Made by a program: the position numbers and the translations under genes
The notes under the pieces: model-generated
Told to the model about the DNA's origin: nothing
The model's database searches: none
What the model saw: only the letters and a program-made list of their open reading frames with translations
Virus record (IMG/VR): IMGVR_UViG_3300002835_000007
Coordinates: 141,932-205,931 of that record
Strand: one strand, 5' to 3'
DNA: 64,000 nt
Shown here: positions 1 through 39,665 of the stretch, one piece after another
Numbering within the stretch: the stretch's first letter is position 1
Layout of the letters: every line of letters begins with the position of its first letter

Positions 1-12
1 TAAGTGAAATAA

Positions 13-177
13 TTATTGTTTATCTATTTCTTCTTTAAATTCTTTAACCACTTCTGGTAAATTAAGGAAGTAACTTCTAACACGTTTACCTAAATCCATA
101 TCATTTGGATTTTCTTTAACTAAATTTTTAATGTCAGTTAACGCTGCTTCTACTAATTCTAATTTCATATTTTTCAT
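13..177 (-). CDS. small hypothetical phage protein (54 aa, not in ORF track)
   Basis: Manual translation MKNMKLELVEAALTDIKNLVKENPNDMDLGKRVRSYFLNLPEVVKEFKEEIDKQ*; PND-x-x-LG-x-x-VR motif seen in small phage proteins; host-type promoter upstream. Confidence 0.7.
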   Translation of the reverse strand: MKNMKLELVEAALTDIKNLVKENPNDMDLGKRVRSYFLNLPEVVKEFKEEIDKQ

Positions 178-194
178 AACAATATTTTTTAACT

Positions 195-223
195 AATGTA
201 CAATAAAAAAACCGAAGATGCAA
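195..223 (-). promoter_or_regulatory. host-sigma-type promoter TTGCAT-N17-TACATT, overlapping the upstream terminator
   Basis: Same 17-nt spacing as the other five host-type promoters listed; lies upstream of 13..177. Confidence 0.45.
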
Positions 224-235
224 ATCCTCGGTTTT
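205..235 (-). terminator. intrinsic terminator after 264..1133
   Basis: Minus strand ACCGAGGAT-TTGC-ATCTTCGGT (one G-U pair) followed by a T run. Confidence 0.75.
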
Positions 236-240
236 AATTT

Positions 241-252
241 ATGTGTTAACTC
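241..252. repeat. left arm of a 12-bp inverted repeat flanking 264..1133
   Basis: ATGTGTTAACTC is the exact reverse complement of GAGTTAACACAT at 1223-1234. Confidence 0.8.
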
Positions 253-263
253 GTTAATTTATT

Positions 264-1133
264 TTATGCTTTTGTGCCGCATTGACCACAAAACTTGTGT
301 CCTTTTCCTAATTTAGCACCACAGTTTGTGCAGTATACTTTTACATTGATATCTTCAACTGTGTTTATTTTTTGTGACACTGGTAACATTTTACATTCAA
401 TAGTGTGAAAAGCCCAGTATTCAAACTTTTTATCCACTGTAACAACCTTTTGGTCAGAAACTGAACCTTGCTCTACTCTACCAGTTTCTATGCTCTTAGA
501 ACGACTCTTTAGCGTTCTAGTTGGATTAGCTTCTTTTGGTGCGTCCATTGATAACATATCATTCATTGAATCAAGTGTTGGTACACTATTACTAACTGAA
601 GAAGTATATAACGCAGTAGACCCAATATGACCAGATGTGTTTGTAATATTAACGCTACCGTTAGGTATAGATGAAGCATACCCACCAATTGTTGTATTGT
701 TTATAGTTCCACCAAAACCTCTAGCAGTATTACTATTTATTGCTAGTGTGTTTAAGTAATTAGGAACTCTTTCTCTGTAGAATTCTACTTTGAAATCACC
801 ATTCTTTTCGATTGCTTTTTTAACTTCTTCAGTATTTGAAACTTCATAAGTATCAAATAAGAATTTTTTAGCAACATCTAAGTATCTGTCTAAGAATACT
901 CTTTGGCCAGGGTTCAATACCAAACCACCTTGTGAAATAGGATTACCATTAAGTATGATTTTAGCCAGAATAACATCCGTTGTTGGATTAAATAATTCGA
1001 TTTGGAACTCTTGTCCCTTTTGTAGATAATACGTTGGCATATCGCCCGTATTGTTGTAGACTTTAAGTCTTGATTTGTTCACAGCAATATTAGCTGTAGG
1101 CACAGATTGTGCCGCAGAATAATTTAAATACAT
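264..1133 (-). CDS. hypothetical protein with C-terminal zinc ribbon
   Basis: 289 aa ending CTNC-x10-CGQC; beta-rich N-terminal domain; low-complexity S/T/N/G linker. Confidence 0.75.
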   Translation of the reverse strand: MYLNYSAAQSVPTANIAVNKSRLKVYNNTGDMPTYYLQKGQEFQIELFNPTTDVILAKIILNGNPISQGGLVLNPGQRVFLDRYLDVAKKFLFDTYEVSNTEEVKKAIEKNGDFKVEFYRERVPNYLNTLAINSNTARGFGGTINNTTIGGYASSIPNGSVNITNTSGHIGSTALYTSSVSNSVPTLDSMNDMLSMDAPKEANPTRTLKSRSKSIETGRVEQGSVSDQKVVTVDKKFEYWAFHTIECKMLPVSQKINTVEDINVKVYCTNCGAKLGKGHKFCGQCGTKA

Positions 1134-1157
1134 TTTAATTAACTTTTAATTTTTGTT

Positions 1158-1234
1158 ATTATTGTACCGATACCTTTGCTGCCTTGACAGCTCTAAACCA
1201 TTTCTGGTCGGGACCAATACGTGAGTTAACACAT
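1158..1234 (-). ncRNA. candidate structured cis-regulatory 5' leader RNA
   Basis: GC-enriched island in AT-rich DNA; hairpins ACCA-GAAA-UGGU and GCUGU-CAAG-GCAGC enclosed by UAUUG/CAAUA; no known family recognised. Confidence 0.45.
1223..1234. repeat. right arm of the 12-bp inverted repeat
   Basis: GAGTTAACACAT, complementary to 241-252. Confidence 0.8.
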
Positions 1235-1235
1235 T

Positions 1236-1244
1236 TATAAATAT
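1236..1244 (-). promoter_or_regulatory. putative late promoter ATATTTATA
   Basis: Motif recurs upstream of about 16 genes in sense orientation. Confidence 0.55.
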
Positions 1245-1259
1245 AGTGAAAAAATGTTT

Positions 1260-1586
1260 TTAGTAAATACCTTTACAAAATATATTTTGTATTTGGTGCC
1301 AATATGTGTCAGCTTCATCTGGAATTGAATCACCAGACATACCTTTTTCTTTAACTTCATTAGCTATTAAATCTTGCTCATGTTTTAAATTATGTAAAGG
1401 TGTATAAATTTTTCGCATAATCTTATACCTAGTTATTCTATCAACGTTTTTTAAGGCTTCTTCAACATTATTAAAGGCTTCTTCAAAAGAATTAATAGTC
1501 ATTTTTTTACAAACATTAGAATAATTTAAATTTTTTTCATCTAAACTAATTTGTTCTCTAATTCTTTTTTTTATAAAACTTTTCAT
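1260..1586 (-). CDS. hypothetical protein, possible internal head protein
   Basis: 108 aa; N-terminus MKSFIKKRIREQISLDE carries I/L-x-E motifs. Confidence 0.65.
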   Translation of the reverse strand: MKSFIKKRIREQISLDEKNLNYSNVCKKMTINSFEEAFNNVEEALKNVDRITRYKIMRKIYTPLHNLKHEQDLIANEVKEKGMSGDSIPDEADTYWHQIQNIFCKGIY

Positions 1587-1587
1587 A

Positions 1588-2991
1588 TTATTGTCCTTTT
1601 CTTAAATCTGATTGATTAACTACGTCAAATTGAATTGCATTTTTAATAGTTGTAGTTTCTAGATTAGATGTAACTAACACGTCTAAGTAATAAGTATTTG
1701 GAATTAAACTAGCAGTATCTAATAAGAAATAGTAATGATTATTTGTTTTTTCTATTGGTTGGAAATCAATAACGGTTAATTCAGCAGCACCTTCAGAAAC
1801 AAATATTCTATATTTAATATCGTCTATTTTTTGTGATTGTTCAACTGTATAAGGTATTCTAGCTGATACTATAACCTTTCTAATGTCACCACGTTTGATT
1901 CTTTCTTTGTTTTGAATACCACTAACAGTAATAGCTGTCTTTTTAGGTAAAAAACTATTGTCGCCAATGTTATAATAATCCATTGAATCTTTTAATACAA
2001 AATCTAAAGAAATATTAGGTCTAGTAACGCCATTAATTGTTATACCAGTCCAAACATCATTAAACATAACACAATCACCATAACTTGATGGTACAATTAT
2101 ATCAATTGAATAAACACCTTTGGTTACATGTTTAACTTTGTTTGATGTGTAAGCTGAAAATAATATATCATTATCATTATAAACATTAACACTAGGTTTT
2201 GAATCTAAGTTAGTTGGGTTACCATTTACATTAACATATAAATATAATTTATTTGGTTTGTCAGTATAAAAATCTGTTCTATCATCATTTATATAATTAG
2301 TATAAACGGTTTCAATAAATGGTTCATAGAATGTTTGTGTGTTGTTTGTGAAAAAACCAACATATTGGTATTGGCTAGTATTTAATAATTCAAATGGGTA
2401 TGCAAATGCTATACCTAAACCATAGTTTGTGTTACCAGTTAAAACACCATTAACATAATCAGTAACATCCATTTCAATGTTTTCATTACCTTTATCAAAA
2501 TGTTGGTAAGTGACAGTAATAGCACTTGGTGAACCAGAATAAACACCAGCACCACCAACCCAATCGTAACCTATTTTTGGTCTTATCCAATTAGATGGAT
2601 TTGTACTGTAACCGTAATCACCAGTAAGTAATATAGGTATTTCATAATCATAACCAACACCATTATCCCAATCTTGGTTGATTTTAAAAAGAATTAAATC
2701 AAAAGATGTAGTCCTATCTTTTGAGCCCATACCAGTATTTAATAAATCTTTATCAAACGAACCAGTATTGGTCATTCTTAATGTGTGTTTTAGATTTGAT
2801 AATTCAGTAAAAGTACCACCAGTATAAAAATTTTTTAACCTTGCTTCATCAAAGTGAAATAAGAATCTAGTGTATTTTTGTTGAGTTAATGCCCCACCAT
2901 AAAATAATTCAGTTACTGGGTTCAAACCAGTATTAACATTAGAGTTACTAATTATAGTATTGCTTTTGTCAAAATATGTGCGTATTACCAT
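1588..2991 (-). CDS. putative virion structural protein (beta-sandwich/Ig-like domains)
   Basis: 467 aa, beta-rich; late motif upstream; adjacent to baseplate gene. Confidence 0.55.
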   Translation of the reverse strand: MVIRTYFDKSNTIISNSNVNTGLNPVTELFYGGALTQQKYTRFLFHFDEARLKNFYTGGTFTELSNLKHTLRMTNTGSFDKDLLNTGMGSKDRTTSFDLILFKINQDWDNGVGYDYEIPILLTGDYGYSTNPSNWIRPKIGYDWVGGAGVYSGSPSAITVTYQHFDKGNENIEMDVTDYVNGVLTGNTNYGLGIAFAYPFELLNTSQYQYVGFFTNNTQTFYEPFIETVYTNYINDDRTDFYTDKPNKLYLYVNVNGNPTNLDSKPSVNVYNDNDILFSAYTSNKVKHVTKGVYSIDIIVPSSYGDCVMFNDVWTGITINGVTRPNISLDFVLKDSMDYYNIGDNSFLPKKTAITVSGIQNKERIKRGDIRKVIVSARIPYTVEQSQKIDDIKYRIFVSEGAAELTVIDFQPIEKTNNHYYFLLDTASLIPNTYYLDVLVTSNLETTTIKNAIQFDVVNQSDLRKGQ

Positions 2992-34784: not shown

Positions 34785-34815
34785 ATAAATATATTCATTT
34801 CTTTTAATATTTATA
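34785..34815. promoter_or_regulatory. back-to-back late promoters
   Basis: ATATTTAT on minus (34785-34792) and ATATTTATA on plus (34807-34815) between divergent genes. Confidence 0.65.
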
Positions 34816-34829
34816 ATAAAAAGAATAAA

Positions 34830-37800
34830 ATGAGTGGATTTAGAACAAAATTAGATTTTTCAGACAATAGACAAGCAAAACAAAGACCTATAACTAGAAC
34901 AGTTTTATCTGGTGGTACGTCATTTGGTTTACCTTTTAATTTGTTACCTAGTGGACCAAATTTAACAACTAGTGCTATTACTGGAAATTATACTTATATA
35001 GCAAGTACGTTTTCTGGTAATAATACAACAACAGTTTATAATTGGTCAGACCCAAGAATGCAATTAGGTGTTTCAGCTTTATCTGCGTTAACTTCATCAA
35101 CATCTGGTTTAACACAAAATACTGGTGCTGTTTGGACACCTAATACAACAACAGTAATCGATGGGAACACAGTTGCTTTGACTTATTCTGGTGTTAATTT
35201 TGACATTTCAGTAGTAACAATAGCACAATTAACTCCATCAACATATAGTGGTACTATAACAACAAATAACTTTGATGTTTATACTGCTTCAACGTTAGAT
35301 TATACTGGTAGAACAATATGGGTTGATGTTTCTGGTATAACTAGAACTGAAAAATTAATAATTTCAGATAATCCACAAGTTGGATATGTTTGGACTTGTT
35401 TGGATTCAGAAGGTATGGGTGGTTGGGTTTTTAATTCAAGTGCCACAACAGCAACAATATGGACTGCTGGTACTGGTGCTAATTCAGCTGTATTAGGTGG
35501 TTCTAATGGTATTGCCAGTGGTTCTACTTCTGTATCTGAAGGTGTTAATACAAGAGCTGGTGGTATAGCTTCACACGCTGAAGGTGGTGGTACACAAGCG
35601 TTAGGTGATTTGTCTCATGCTGAAGGTGAAGATACAATAGCTAGTAATACAGCAGCACATGCTGAAGGTGTTAATACAATTGCAAGTGGTGTTTATTCAC
35701 ATGCTGAAGGTAGTAATACAATAGCTAGTAATGCTAGAAGTCATGCTGAAGGTTATTTATCAATAGCAAGTGGTGTTGTTTCTCACGCTGAAGGTGAGAG
35801 TACAACCGCAAGTGGTGGTAATTCGCATGCTGAAGGTCATAGTACAATAGCGAGTGGAAATACATCACATGCTGAAGGTGGTAATACGGTAGCTGGTGGT
35901 GGTTATTCACATGCTGAAGGAAAAGATACAATAGCTAGTGGTTATAGAAGTCATGCTGAAGGTAATATTACTATTGCAAGTGGTGATACATCACATGCTG
36001 AGGGTTCTGGTTCGATAGCTGGTGGTGATAGTTCGCATGCCGAAGGTTCTAATACAATAGCTTCTGCGTCTCAATCACATGCTGAAGGTTCTAGTACAAT
36101 CGCAAGTGGTTCTACATCACACGCTGAGGGTCAAAATACAATAGCTGGTGGTAGTGTATCTCACGCTGAAGGTAGTGGTACAATAGCTAGTGGGTTTGCA
36201 TCCCATGCTGAGGGTAGTGACACAATAGCGTATGGTACAAATTCACACGCTGGTGGTTATAGTTCACGTACTGACAGTAATTATAGTTTTATTCATTCGA
36301 ATCAATCAGTTATATCTAGTGGGGGTGAAAACAGTTATATTTTAGGTGGTAAAGAGAATTATATAGAATTATCCGATTATTCTGGTATTTTAGGTGGTAG
36401 ATATAATATTTTAGGTATAGCTCAACCAGGTTTTAACGCAAATGCTGAAAATTCTTTTATTGGTGGTGGTTATTCCAATATTATTTATGAGGCAACAAAT
36501 AACTCAACAATATTGGGTGGTAGAGAGAATGAAATACATAAATATAGTAATGACTCAGCTATAGTTGGTGGTCGTAATAATGAGATATCTGGTGGTTCGA
36601 TTAGTTCTGGTATTTTTGTTGGTACTGGTAATACAATATCTAATATTTCTAAATACGCTGCAATCATTGCTGGTCGAAACAATACAATTTCTGGTCACTC
36701 AAATTCAGTAATAGTTGGAGGTTTTAATAACTTTATTGATTTCTGTTTAAATAACTATGGTGATTCATCTAATGAATCTATAATTGGTGGTGCTAATAAT
36801 TCAATTTATGTTGCTGATAATTCATTTATTGCTGGTGGTAATAATAACTTAATTGATGGTAGAACAGCTGGTATAGGTAGTGTTAGTAGTTTTATACTAG
36901 GTGGTGTGAATTGTTCTGCTTTTACTAGTGTTCGTTCTGGTATAATTGGTGGTCTTAATAATAGTATAAAACCTTCTTATTGTAGTTATGTTTCAAGTTC
37001 AATTATTATTGGTGGTGAGGAAAATGAATATAATCCTAGTACCAGTCTTATTAGTGGTAGTGGTGCTAGAGTTACAATTATTGGTGGGTATCAAAATAAA
37101 GTAACTGGTGAAGGTGTTTCTGATGTTTCAATATTTGGTGGATATAAGAATCTTTATACTAGTCATGTTGGTAATGGTGGCAATGCTAATACTATTGTAG
37201 GTGGGTCTGGGAATACTATGAATAGTAGGTCCACTTATTTTGGTCAAGACATATCTTATGCTAGTATTTTAGGTGGTGCTGGAAATAATATATCTTCTGA
37301 TGTTAGTGTTGCTTCAGTATTACAATTATCTAGTTATTCTAATATAACTGGTGGTTTTGAAAACACTATAACTGGTAGTTCTAATTCGTTTATTGGTGGT
37401 GGTACTGGAAATGTTATTAAAGACGCTGCAAATGATTCAGTAATATTAGGTGGTAAACTAAACAGTATCGAAAGAGGATTTGCTAATTATGCTACTACTA
37501 TTAGTTCAGCAATAATTGCTGGGTCTGGTAATACAATTAATGGTCATTTTTATTCAGCTATATTGGCTGGTATGGGTAATACTATACATTTTGATTTAGC
37601 TGGAACTGAAGGAAAGAGTAATGAAACTATTTTAGGTGGTGCTTTTAATACTATATCTGCATCAACATCTTCTAGTATCGTTGGAGGGACATATAATGAA
37701 ATACAAAATTACACTTCGTCAATTATTTTAGGTGGATTACGTAATAGATTGCTTGATTTTAGTACTGACACCATTTATAATTCTGGTACTGGTGGTGACA

Positions 37801-39665
37801 ATGTTGATGGTAATGATGTGACAAACTTTAGCACAATAATTGGTGGTGTTGATAACACAATTACTGGTAAAACTGCTCATTGTACAATTTTAGGAGGGTC
37901 TGGTAATACAATAAATGGTCATGCTACTTCTAATACAAATTATAATTCAGCTATAATTGGTGGTAGAAGAAATGTTATTAACCAATATGTTAGTAGAAGC
38001 GTTATTTTAGGTGGTAGTGATATTACAGCGACAACAAGTGATTATGTTTATGTACCTAATTTAATTGTTAATAGTGGCGGTACAGCATCTAAATTAGGTA
38101 TAAATACAAAAACACCAGAATATGTTATTGATGCTAGAGCTAATAATGCTAGACTTGTTTTGGCTGATATTTACACTGGTGATGATTTACCTTTTAAGAG
38201 TTTTGTTTTTTCAGCTAATAGTACCAACGTACCACAAATAGCGGCTGCTACTAATAGTTATTTAGGTGGTTTTGGGTTATCTTTACAAATGGGTGTTTTG
38301 GGTGATGATTCAATATCAACAGCCACTTCAGAATTGGTTGGACTTTCTGGTGATACATATTTAAGTTCATCACAAAAAACAAACAACTTAAACATCATTA
38401 ATAGAAGTGGTGGTAGTGGTACTAACAATATAAGAATGTATGCTGGTATAAATAGTGTTAGTGCAGCAGCAGTACCAGATTTTCAGATTCAAGGTGATGG
38501 TACAAATAGAGGTTATATTGGTATTCAAACTGGTAATCCACAATATTTGATTGATGCTAGAGGAACTGGAAATAGATTATTTTATAGTAGTACTGGTGTA
38601 GGTAATATAACTCTTTCAGCAACAACTGGTCTACCAAGTGTTGGAGTGGTTGCTGGTACAGCTAATACCGCAAATAAATTAGCTTCGATAAGTATGGGTG
38701 CTAGAGCTTGGGATGATGCTATATATACAGTATATGGTTATCAAGGTGATGCATTCATATATGCTGGTATTTTTACAAATGGGTTAAATATTATTTCAAA
38801 TGATGGTTCAACATCTGGTACTGGTGCTGATTATATTAGATTCTATGCTGGTCAAACTTCTGGTGCTGGTGCTTCTAATAACCCAGATTTACATATACAA
38901 GGTTCTGGTTCATCTAGAGGTTATGTTGCTATTAATGTACCTCACAATCAAGACCCTACACAAAGATTAGATGTTAATGGTAACGCTAGATTTAGAGGTG
39001 TTGGTTCGTCAGCTTCAGCTGGTGCATTACATTATACTTCTGATGGTACATTAACTACAAATACATCAGACGAAAGATTAAAAACAAACATTGAAACACT
39101 TACTAATGCGTTGGATAAAGTAAATCAATTAAGAGGTGTAAAATATAATTGGACTGAAGAACCGAATGGTGATGTTAGGATAGGTTTAATAGCACAAGAA
39201 GTTAATAGTATAGTTCCAGAGTTAACTTTTGTGAATAAAAACACAGAAGAAGAATATATGGGTGTGCATTATGATAATGTAGTTGCTTTATTAATCGAGG
39301 CAGTAAAAGAATTATCGTCTGGTGTTACAACATCAAATAATACTCATTTAGAAACACAAACAATATTAGCTGAAGATAATAACATTGAATTAAATTTCAA
39401 TGGAACGCAAGAAACATCATTAGGTGGTGGTTTAAGTGTATTACATGCAAAAGGTCAAGACCAATCAGCTGATTTGATAACTGATGCTAACGGTAATTTC
39501 ATCACAAACAACGATTTTAAACCTAATGCATTAACAATACCTTTATACACACCAACATCATCTAACGATACTGCTGGTAGTGAAGGTAACATAACGAGAG
39601 ATGATAACTATATGTACGTTAAAACTAGTACTGGTTGGAAAAGAACTAATTTAGAAAACTTCTAA
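34830..39665 (+). CDS. giant tail fibre/adhesin with beta-roll repeats and peptidase S74 chaperone domain
   Basis: True start MSGFRTK at 34830; 14-aa SHAEG repeats; I-x-GG-x-x-N repeats; SDERLK..LRGV..W..GLIAQEV..LIEAVKEL. Confidence 0.85.
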   Translation: MSGFRTKLDFSDNRQAKQRPITRTVLSGGTSFGLPFNLLPSGPNLTTSAITGNYTYIASTFSGNNTTTVYNWSDPRMQLGVSALSALTSSTSGLTQNTGAVWTPNTTTVIDGNTVALTYSGVNFDISVVTIAQLTPSTYSGTITTNNFDVYTASTLDYTGRTIWVDVSGITRTEKLIISDNPQVGYVWTCLDSEGMGGWVFNSSATTATIWTAGTGANSAVLGGSNGIASGSTSVSEGVNTRAGGIASHAEGGGTQALGDLSHAEGEDTIASNTAAHAEGVNTIASGVYSHAEGSNTIASNARSHAEGYLSIASGVVSHAEGESTTASGGNSHAEGHSTIASGNTSHAEGGNTVAGGGYSHAEGKDTIASGYRSHAEGNITIASGDTSHAEGSGSIAGGDSSHAEGSNTIASASQSHAEGSSTIASGSTSHAEGQNTIAGGSVSHAEGSGTIASGFASHAEGSDTIAYGTNSHAGGYSSRTDSNYSFIHSNQSVISSGGENSYILGGKENYIELSDYSGILGGRYNILGIAQPGFNANAENSFIGGGYSNIIYEATNNSTILGGRENEIHKYSNDSAIVGGRNNEISGGSISSGIFVGTGNTISNISKYAAIIAGRNNTISGHSNSVIVGGFNNFIDFCLNNYGDSSNESIIGGANNSIYVADNSFIAGGNNNLIDGRTAGIGSVSSFILGGVNCSAFTSVRSGIIGGLNNSIKPSYCSYVSSSIIIGGEENEYNPSTSLISGSGARVTIIGGYQNKVTGEGVSDVSIFGGYKNLYTSHVGNGGNANTIVGGSGNTMNSRSTYFGQDISYASILGGAGNNISSDVSVASVLQLSSYSNITGGFENTITGSSNSFIGGGTGNVIKDAANDSVILGGKLNSIERGFANYATTISSAIIAGSGNTINGHFYSAILAGMGNTIHFDLAGTEGKSNETILGGAFNTISASTSSSIVGGTYNEIQNYTSSIILGGLRNRLLDFSTDTIYNSGTGGDNVDGNDVTNFSTIIGGVDNTITGKTAHCTILGGSGNTINGHATSNTNYNSAIIGGRRNVINQYVSRSVILGGSDITATTSDYVYVPNLIVNSGGTASKLGINTKTPEYVIDARANNARLVLADIYTGDDLPFKSFVFSANSTNVPQIAAATNSYLGGFGLSLQMGVLGDDSISTATSELVGLSGDTYLSSSQKTNNLNIINRSGGSGTNNIRMYAGINSVSAAAVPDFQIQGDGTNRGYIGIQTGNPQYLIDARGTGNRLFYSSTGVGNITLSATTGLPSVGVVAGTANTANKLASISMGARAWDDAIYTVYGYQGDAFIYAGIFTNGLNIISNDGSTSGTGADYIRFYAGQTSGAGASNNPDLHIQGSGSSRGYVAINVPHNQDPTQRLDVNGNARFRGVGSSASAGALHYTSDGTLTTNTSDERLKTNIETLTNALDKVNQLRGVKYNWTEEPNGDVRIGLIAQEVNSIVPELTFVNKNTEEEYMGVHYDNVVALLIEAVKELSSGVTTSNNTHLETQTILAEDNNIELNFNGTQETSLGGGLSVLHAKGQDQSADLITDANGNFITNNDFKPNALTIPLYTPTSSNDTAGSEGNITRDDNYMYVKTSTGWKRTNLENF
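35535..36257 (+). repeat. 42-nt-period coding repeat (SHAEGxxTIASGxx, 16 HAEG copies plus 2 variants)
   Basis: Counted in the translation; in frame, with synonymous variation. Confidence 0.9.

Follow-up and report, generated by a model that had tools for sequence, protein, structure and literature searches.

A conserved gene with unknown function was found at positions 264-1133 (minus strand) of the analysed window, a 64,000-nucleotide stretch that forms the last 64 kb of a single 205,931-bp contig (30% G+C) from freshwater lake metagenomes. Reading along the minus strand, the locus consists of a promoter-like motif, ATATTTATAA (1244 to 1235), a 12-nt sequence termed here the 5' arm, AUGUGUUAACUC (1234 to 1223), two nucleotides, a 59-nt structured element (1220 to 1162), an A-rich linker (1161 to 1134), the AUG (1133), a 289-codon ORF with its stop codon at 266 to 264, 11 nt, the 3' arm, GAGUUAACACAU (252 to 241), 5 nt, and a terminator-like hairpin with 12 pairs (235 to 208) followed by a U-run (the whole spanning 201-235 and having the GC-rich hairpin and U-run of an intrinsic, factor-independent terminator). 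The A-rich linker contains a pre-AUG element, AGUUAAU (1138-1144; -11 to -5). On the plus strand ATGTGTTAACTC lies at 241-252 and its exact reverse complement, GAGTTAACACAT, at 1223-1234, so the perfect 12-bp inverted repeat named in the original prediction was confirmed. The pair is unique in the genome and extends to 19 nt at 84% complementarity (234-252 with 1223-1241).

The promoter vocabulary of the genome and its relation to the 5' arm

To investigate where the transcript may begin, we tested for motifs enriched upstream of the genes of this genome, and two kinds were found (for example at 1235, 114614, 121291 and 188876 of the whole genome, G000:C1, and at window 34807-34830). One comprises TAnnTTTG-type boxes (TATCTTTG, TACATTTG), which are of the Bacteroidota -7 promoter type. 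The other is a phage-specific motif, ATATTTAT(A), present in 32 upstream regions against 2.45 expected and lying 12-28 nt before most start codons, including that of the tail-fibre gene at window 34830-39665 (Peptidase_S74 domain). The original prediction had placed the 5' arm where a late-motif transcript would start; the T4-type motif TATAAATA is not the one enriched here and was replaced by ATATTTAT(A). Four genes have their ATG only 12 nt after the first base of the motif and are nearly leaderless (two of them, G000:C1 1235 and 121291, encoding paralogues with the same N-terminus), so transcription must begin about 10-12 nt after the motif start, placing the 5' arm at the predicted first nucleotides of the mRNA. 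The leader of the bracketed gene is 111 nt from the motif start, which is unusually long for this genome. A mini-ORF (AUG-UGU-UAA) formed by the 5' arm was considered but was not conserved in relatives.

The encoded protein is predicted to have an N-terminal beta-sandwich, a disordered Gly/Ser/Thr/Asn-rich middle (residues 131-211) and a C-terminal zinc ribbon (PF13240, residues 267-288). Megablast of the region against GenBank phages gave no match, and sequence searches of PHROGs, Pfam, NCBIfam and the PDB gave no function beyond the zinc ribbon. Fold searches of the PDB, BFVD, AFDB clusters and the ESM Atlas matched only uncharacterised beta-sandwich proteins of phages, giant viruses and nudiviruses, and DUF7918-like proteins. 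The conserved upstream neighbour (467 aa) models as a chain of Ig-like domains and could not be named; the block may be virion-related, although the function of the 289-aa protein is unknown.

Both arms are conserved and covary in related phages

The chance expectation of the repeat, which had been proposed as a check, was computed by shuffling. Shuffling the two spacers gave a perfect inverted repeat of 12 or more in 0.275% of 20,000 trials (P about 0.003), and across the 781 pairs of intergenic spacers lying within 4 kb of each other shuffles gave about 6.2 such repeats per genome. The 12-mer alone is therefore not significant after multiple testing, and its significance comes only from conservation with covariation in relatives. 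When other genes of this genome were scanned for promoter-anchored 5'-3' complementarity, only A/T-only, chance-like matches were found, so the feature is specific to this gene.

Relatives of the encoded protein were found in 80 IMG/VR contigs (40-100% identity), in the Lak Prevotella megaphages and in other phages of 460-640 kb (33-39% identity), with more than 2,500 homologues in metagenomes, all unnamed. The gene follows the same four upstream genes (encoding 473, 152, 338 and 467 aa) in 76 of 81 loci, while the DNA downstream varies, indicating a vertically inherited core gene and not a cassette. All 81 loci have the gene in the same orientation relative to promoter and terminator.

The original prediction would have failed if the arms were not conserved, or did not both lie inside the transcript, in related phages. 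Reading the flanks of the relatives showed instead that both arms are kept at the same positions and change together, from ATGTGTTAACTC / GAGTTAACACAT in this phage to TTACGTTAACTC / GAGTTAACGTAA, TATATACGTTAACTC / GAGTTAACGTATATA, TGCGTTAACTC / GAGTTAACGCA, ATATAGTTAACTA / TAGTTAACTATAT, ATGATTAACCC / GGGTTAATCAT, ATCGTGATTGA / TCAATCACGAT and ACGTGATTAAACTA / TAGTTTAATCACGT in others; that they lie inside the transcript is inferred from motif spacing and terminator position. At least 55 of 62 non-redundant relatives keep a helix of 9-16 bp. In 51 of these it was found at the canonical places by an automatic scan, and five further loci keep it at a displaced site: after a frameshifted gene end (locus L072), 0.9-1.2 kb further down behind an insertion (loci L010, L022 and L055, where the 3' arm had at first appeared to be lost), and at the outer ends of an expanded unit (locus L027). 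There were 35 distinct helix sequences, with compensatory changes at every non-core position. Cognate arms paired over 11.0 bp on average, against 7.96 bp (sd 0.215) for permuted partners, with none of 10,000 permutations reaching the observed value.

In the 38 distinct loci with a GTTAAC-type core, the helix runs from -3 to +7 around the core (about 11-12 bp) and pairing drops sharply outside these positions. The flanking positions showed all the expected compensatory types. Position -1 was CG in 26, TA in 6, AT in 4 and GC in 1; position -2 was GC in 16, AT in 16 and TA in 2; and position +7 was CG in 21 and AT in 8. The five variable helix positions were 90.5% paired in register, against 21-45% when the partner was slid by 1-3 nt, although the register was chosen by best helix, which favours pairing and flatters the figure somewhat. 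The palindromic core GUUAAC is more conserved than a mere helix needs, so something besides pairing constrains it. The anatomy was fixed, with the motif kept in nearly all related loci, the helix starting 10-11 nt after the motif start in 28 of 38 loci, the 3' arm lying 5-20 nt after the stop codon, and a terminator-type hairpin (GC-rich, followed by a U-run, and differing in sequence between relatives) following 0-7 nt after the 3' arm in 45 of 49 loci.

Insertions at the two ends of the gene gave further information on what the arms follow. In two relatives (L027:3172-3870 and L027:3880-3945; L070:2203-3033) a GIY-YIG-type homing-endonuclease gene is inserted just after the leader and the first ~20 codons of the 289-aa gene. 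In L027 this stretches the unit to 1.87 kb, and a second, diverged copy of the structured leader is carried in front of the intact gene, so that each of the two ORFs has its own leader structure whereas the arms still sit only at the outer ends of the unit. The leader structure thus goes with the start of an ORF and the arms with the transcript ends. In L010, L022 and L055 the insertion (about 0.9-1.2 kb) sits directly after the stop codon, with the old gene end (zinc-ribbon codons), the 3' arm and the terminator still present downstream, about 870-1200 nt after the stop of the homologous gene. Both ends of this gene therefore look like insertion hot spots.

A covarying three-way junction in the leader

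The original prediction had also described the leader as structured, and this was found to be so. RNAalifold on 60 leaders predicted a three-way junction (1162-1220, minus strand) with a closing stem of 10 pairs (P1) and two hairpins (P2 and P3), in which 16 of 20 pairs showed compensatory changes. A hand-set structure counted on 55 distinct sequences was 99.3% paired, with 15 of 19 pairs changed on both sides, against 36-50% paired in slid controls. Three G-U pairs and the junction strands UUUAGAG and CAAAG were nearly invariant, which points to a specific ligand or protein contact. The fold z-score was -2.2.

A covariance model of the leader found a single copy in this genome (E 8.6e-17) and copies before the homologues in the 462-kb and 636-kb phages LR756500 and LR756504 (E about 1e-10). 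The model did not detect the Lak phages at E<=1, their versions being too diverged, although a similar three-stem layout can be drawn by eye. Rfam 15 had no match to the leader: at E<=5 the only matches in window 1-1700 were four chance-level hits (E 0.76-4.5, far below gathering scores), three on the terminator region and one inside the ORF.

Evidence for pairing at the RNA level

Departures from Watson-Crick pairing inside the helix were mostly G-U on the sense strand (six) rather than A-C (two to three), which is suggestive of RNA but too small an excess to be significant. The arms track the ends of the transcription unit rather than the gene (L027), and the flanks of the core change quickly between close relatives yet stay complementary, which a protein-binding site would not require. 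Partition-function folding of full-length mRNAs from 17 loci placed at least 93% of the helix pairs in the 5'-3' helix, so nothing in the 1-kb message competes with it; for a perfect 12-bp helix this prediction is not independent evidence. Only four weak metatranscriptome runs held fragments of relatives, and their contigs gave no transcript ends. One of these (run X21, record 2), an RNA-library contig from a relative, covers window 976-1245, including the leader, and continues 71 nt upstream past the promoter motif, so either read-through from the upstream gene or DNA carry-over exists. A DNA contig spanned the region without an inversion joint, although contigs only were examined and rare variants could be missed.

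The core of the 5' arm (GUUAACU) is also complementary to the conserved pre-AUG element AGUUAAU. In clades whose core became GUGAUU-like, the sequence at the start codon mostly became AAUUAUG, which is again complementary. Complementarity of the 5' arm to the pre-AUG region was 6.19 for cognate against 5.86 (sd 0.085) for swapped partners (0 of 5000), whereas that of the 3' arm was not above control (5.72 against 5.68). This helix is short and A/U-rich, so chance complementarity is high, and the covariation rests on three or four clades and is confounded with phylogeny, with some GUGAUU-type loci (L063, L074 and L076) lacking the matching pre-AUG sequence. In leader-only folds, 4-6.7 bp of this pairing were expected in some loci, but only 0.23 bp in this phage.

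Interpretation

Our analysis demonstrates a 5'-3' complementarity that is maintained by compensatory evolution, at fixed positions relative to promoter motif, stop codon and terminator, across a large phage family, and a separate three-way junction maintained in the same way; that both arms lie in one transcript, that the message closes into a panhandle and that the pairing acts in cis after transcription are inferences, as transcript ends were not measured and the transcription start rests on motif spacing alone. The reading that we favour, with moderate confidence, is that the unit from promoter motif to terminator is one monocistronic, late-type transcription unit of a huge phage of a Bacteroidota-like host. 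In this view the first ~12 nucleotides of the mRNA pair with a stretch of the short 3' UTR just before the terminator hairpin, closing the ~1-kb message into a loop with both ends buried in two adjacent helices. Most likely, by analogy only, the pairing shields the 5' end and the leader from 5'-end-dependent or endonucleolytic decay, as the 14-bp 5'/3'-UTR helix of B. subtilis hbs mRNA does (PMC5737220), which would mark complete transcripts as stable and translatable, and it may also gate translation. The three-way junction is probably a binding site for a protein or small ligand that sets translation of this gene. The panhandle proposed in the original prediction is thus supported by comparison with related phages.

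Other readings were weighed against this one. An unlikely but possible extension is an RNA switch in which the 5' arm, pairing alternatively with the pre-AUG region (in some clades covering the start codon) or with the longer 3' arm, masks the initiation region in incomplete or 3'-truncated RNA until the 3' arm displaces it, so that only complete messages are translated; the reverse polarity, as in hok, is also possible. This would explain why the core is conserved, since three partners must change together, while the flanks, for which only two must change, vary freely, and the 5' arm stays intact where an insertion has moved the 3' arm about 1 kb away, but the pre-AUG pairing has the weaknesses given above. 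In its fullest form, also tentative, the 5' arm would toggle between a local 5' hairpin, the pre-AUG element and the 3' arm and, together with the three-way junction as a new riboregulator binding a protein or a ligand, would form a built-in mRNA integrity sensor conserved across a large family of huge phages. It is more doubtful that the helix is a substrate of a double-strand-specific RNase (RNase III type), like the stems that flank rRNAs, trimming read-through transcripts to a defined mature mRNA or triggering decay as in icaR, where 5'/3' pairing creates an RNase III substrate (PMC3868564). The absence of a terminator between the upstream gene and the promoter, together with the RNA contig that crosses the promoter in a relative, means that longer precursors may exist, and the pairing often extends imperfectly beyond the core, but the conserved helix is short for RNase III and starts where transcription is predicted to start, so it is not flanked by precursor sequence.

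Action of the arms as DNA was judged very unlikely and less parsimonious, although not excluded. The original prediction had offered operator sites as an alternative, and two inverted binding sites for one protein (looping or insulating the gene), or crossover sites of an invertible segment that switches the gene off, would fit the palindromic core GTTAAC and the layout of some invertible switches, in which inverted repeats bracket a gene but exclude its promoter. Against this are the single orientation in 81 of 81 loci from many metagenomes, the absence of an inversion joint in the DNA contigs, the rapidly changing yet complementary flanks and the G-U departures with few A-C. No recombinase was recognisable next to the gene, but as the neighbouring ORFs have no family matches at all this leaves undecided whether one is encoded nearby. 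Least likely is a chance repeat without function or the ends of a self-contained mobile cassette, the other alternative of the original prediction. Although the 12-mer is within genome-wide chance and the downstream DNA varies between relatives, these readings are contradicted by the conserved upstream gene order and by compensatory changes in the arms, which chance cannot give.

Relation to known systems

The closest system is the hbs mRNA of B. subtilis (Braun, Durand and Condon 2017, PMC5737220), where a helix of similar length (14 bp there; 12 bp here and 9-16 bp in relatives) joins the 5' UTR and 3' UTR of one short monocistronic, highly expressed mRNA with a structured leader, and limits endonuclease cleavage in the leader. 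Here the 5' partner is the predicted extreme 5' end, the 3' partner abuts the terminator, the transcript is viral with a Bacteroidota-like host, and the evidence is comparative (dozens of covarying variants) and not experimental; the RNases involved are unknown, and modulation of an RNase Y cut in the leader was not assayed. In S. aureus icaR (Ruiz de los Mozos et al. 2013, PMC3868564) intramolecular 3' UTR-5' UTR pairing also controls one mRNA, but there a long 3' UTR pairs with the Shine-Dalgarno region and creates an RNase III site, whereas here a 3' UTR of about 60 nt pairs with nt 1-12 of the predicted mRNA, about 100 nt upstream of the AUG.

The comparison with hok made in the original prediction holds only as an analogy of architecture. 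In hok/sok fold-back inhibition (fbi) the 5' end of the full-length mRNA pairs with its 3' end, and here too a further partner for the 5' element may exist, which would allow refolding. However, no small (~50 aa) membrane toxin ORF and no overlapping mok frame are present, the only conserved ORF being that of the 289-aa protein, a conserved core gene of the phage family. An antisense RNA was not found either, but there were no usable RNA reads of this phage, and neither a Sok-like RNA nor activation by 3' trimming was measured. The panhandles and cyclisation sequences of RNA viruses (bunyavirus, influenza, flavivirus) likewise show terminal complementarity that covaries between relatives, but those are genome ends used by RNA polymerases, and this is an mRNA of a DNA phage.

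Intramolecular 5'-3' UTR pairing in bacterial-type mRNAs is known from only a handful of cases, each studied in one species (hok, icaR, hbs). Here this architecture, joined to a new structured leader motif absent from Rfam, is supported by dozens of independent compensatory variants across a large, environmentally widespread family of huge phages, with relatives reaching the Lak megaphages of gut Prevotella. This provides an unusually clean natural data set with which to ask what end-to-end pairing does for an mRNA in hosts that lack Shine-Dalgarno-led initiation, and flags a conserved but wholly uncharacterised phage protein as tightly regulated after transcription.

Additional features of the locus and its relatives

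A distant relative (L084, LR756500.1 122954-124557; 33% protein identity) has 8-nt and 12-nt blocks of 5'/3' complementarity (TGTTAAGG / CCTTAACA and TCTCACTTTGTT / AACAAAGTGAGA), in non-nested order and with no obvious terminator following. The Lak homologues (L081, Lak-B5, and L083, Lak-A1) contain in-frame TAG codons, consistent with stop-codon recoding in those phages. Within the bracketed gene of this phage, an exact 10-nt direct repeat, TTGTGCCGCA, lies inside the last and the first codons (window 272-281 and 1107-1116), and on the mRNA the copy near the 5' end of the ORF is part of a predicted local hairpin. A tandem 21-nt direct repeat (86% identical) at window 1441-1482 lies inside the upstream 108-aa ORF and encodes a duplicated heptapeptide.
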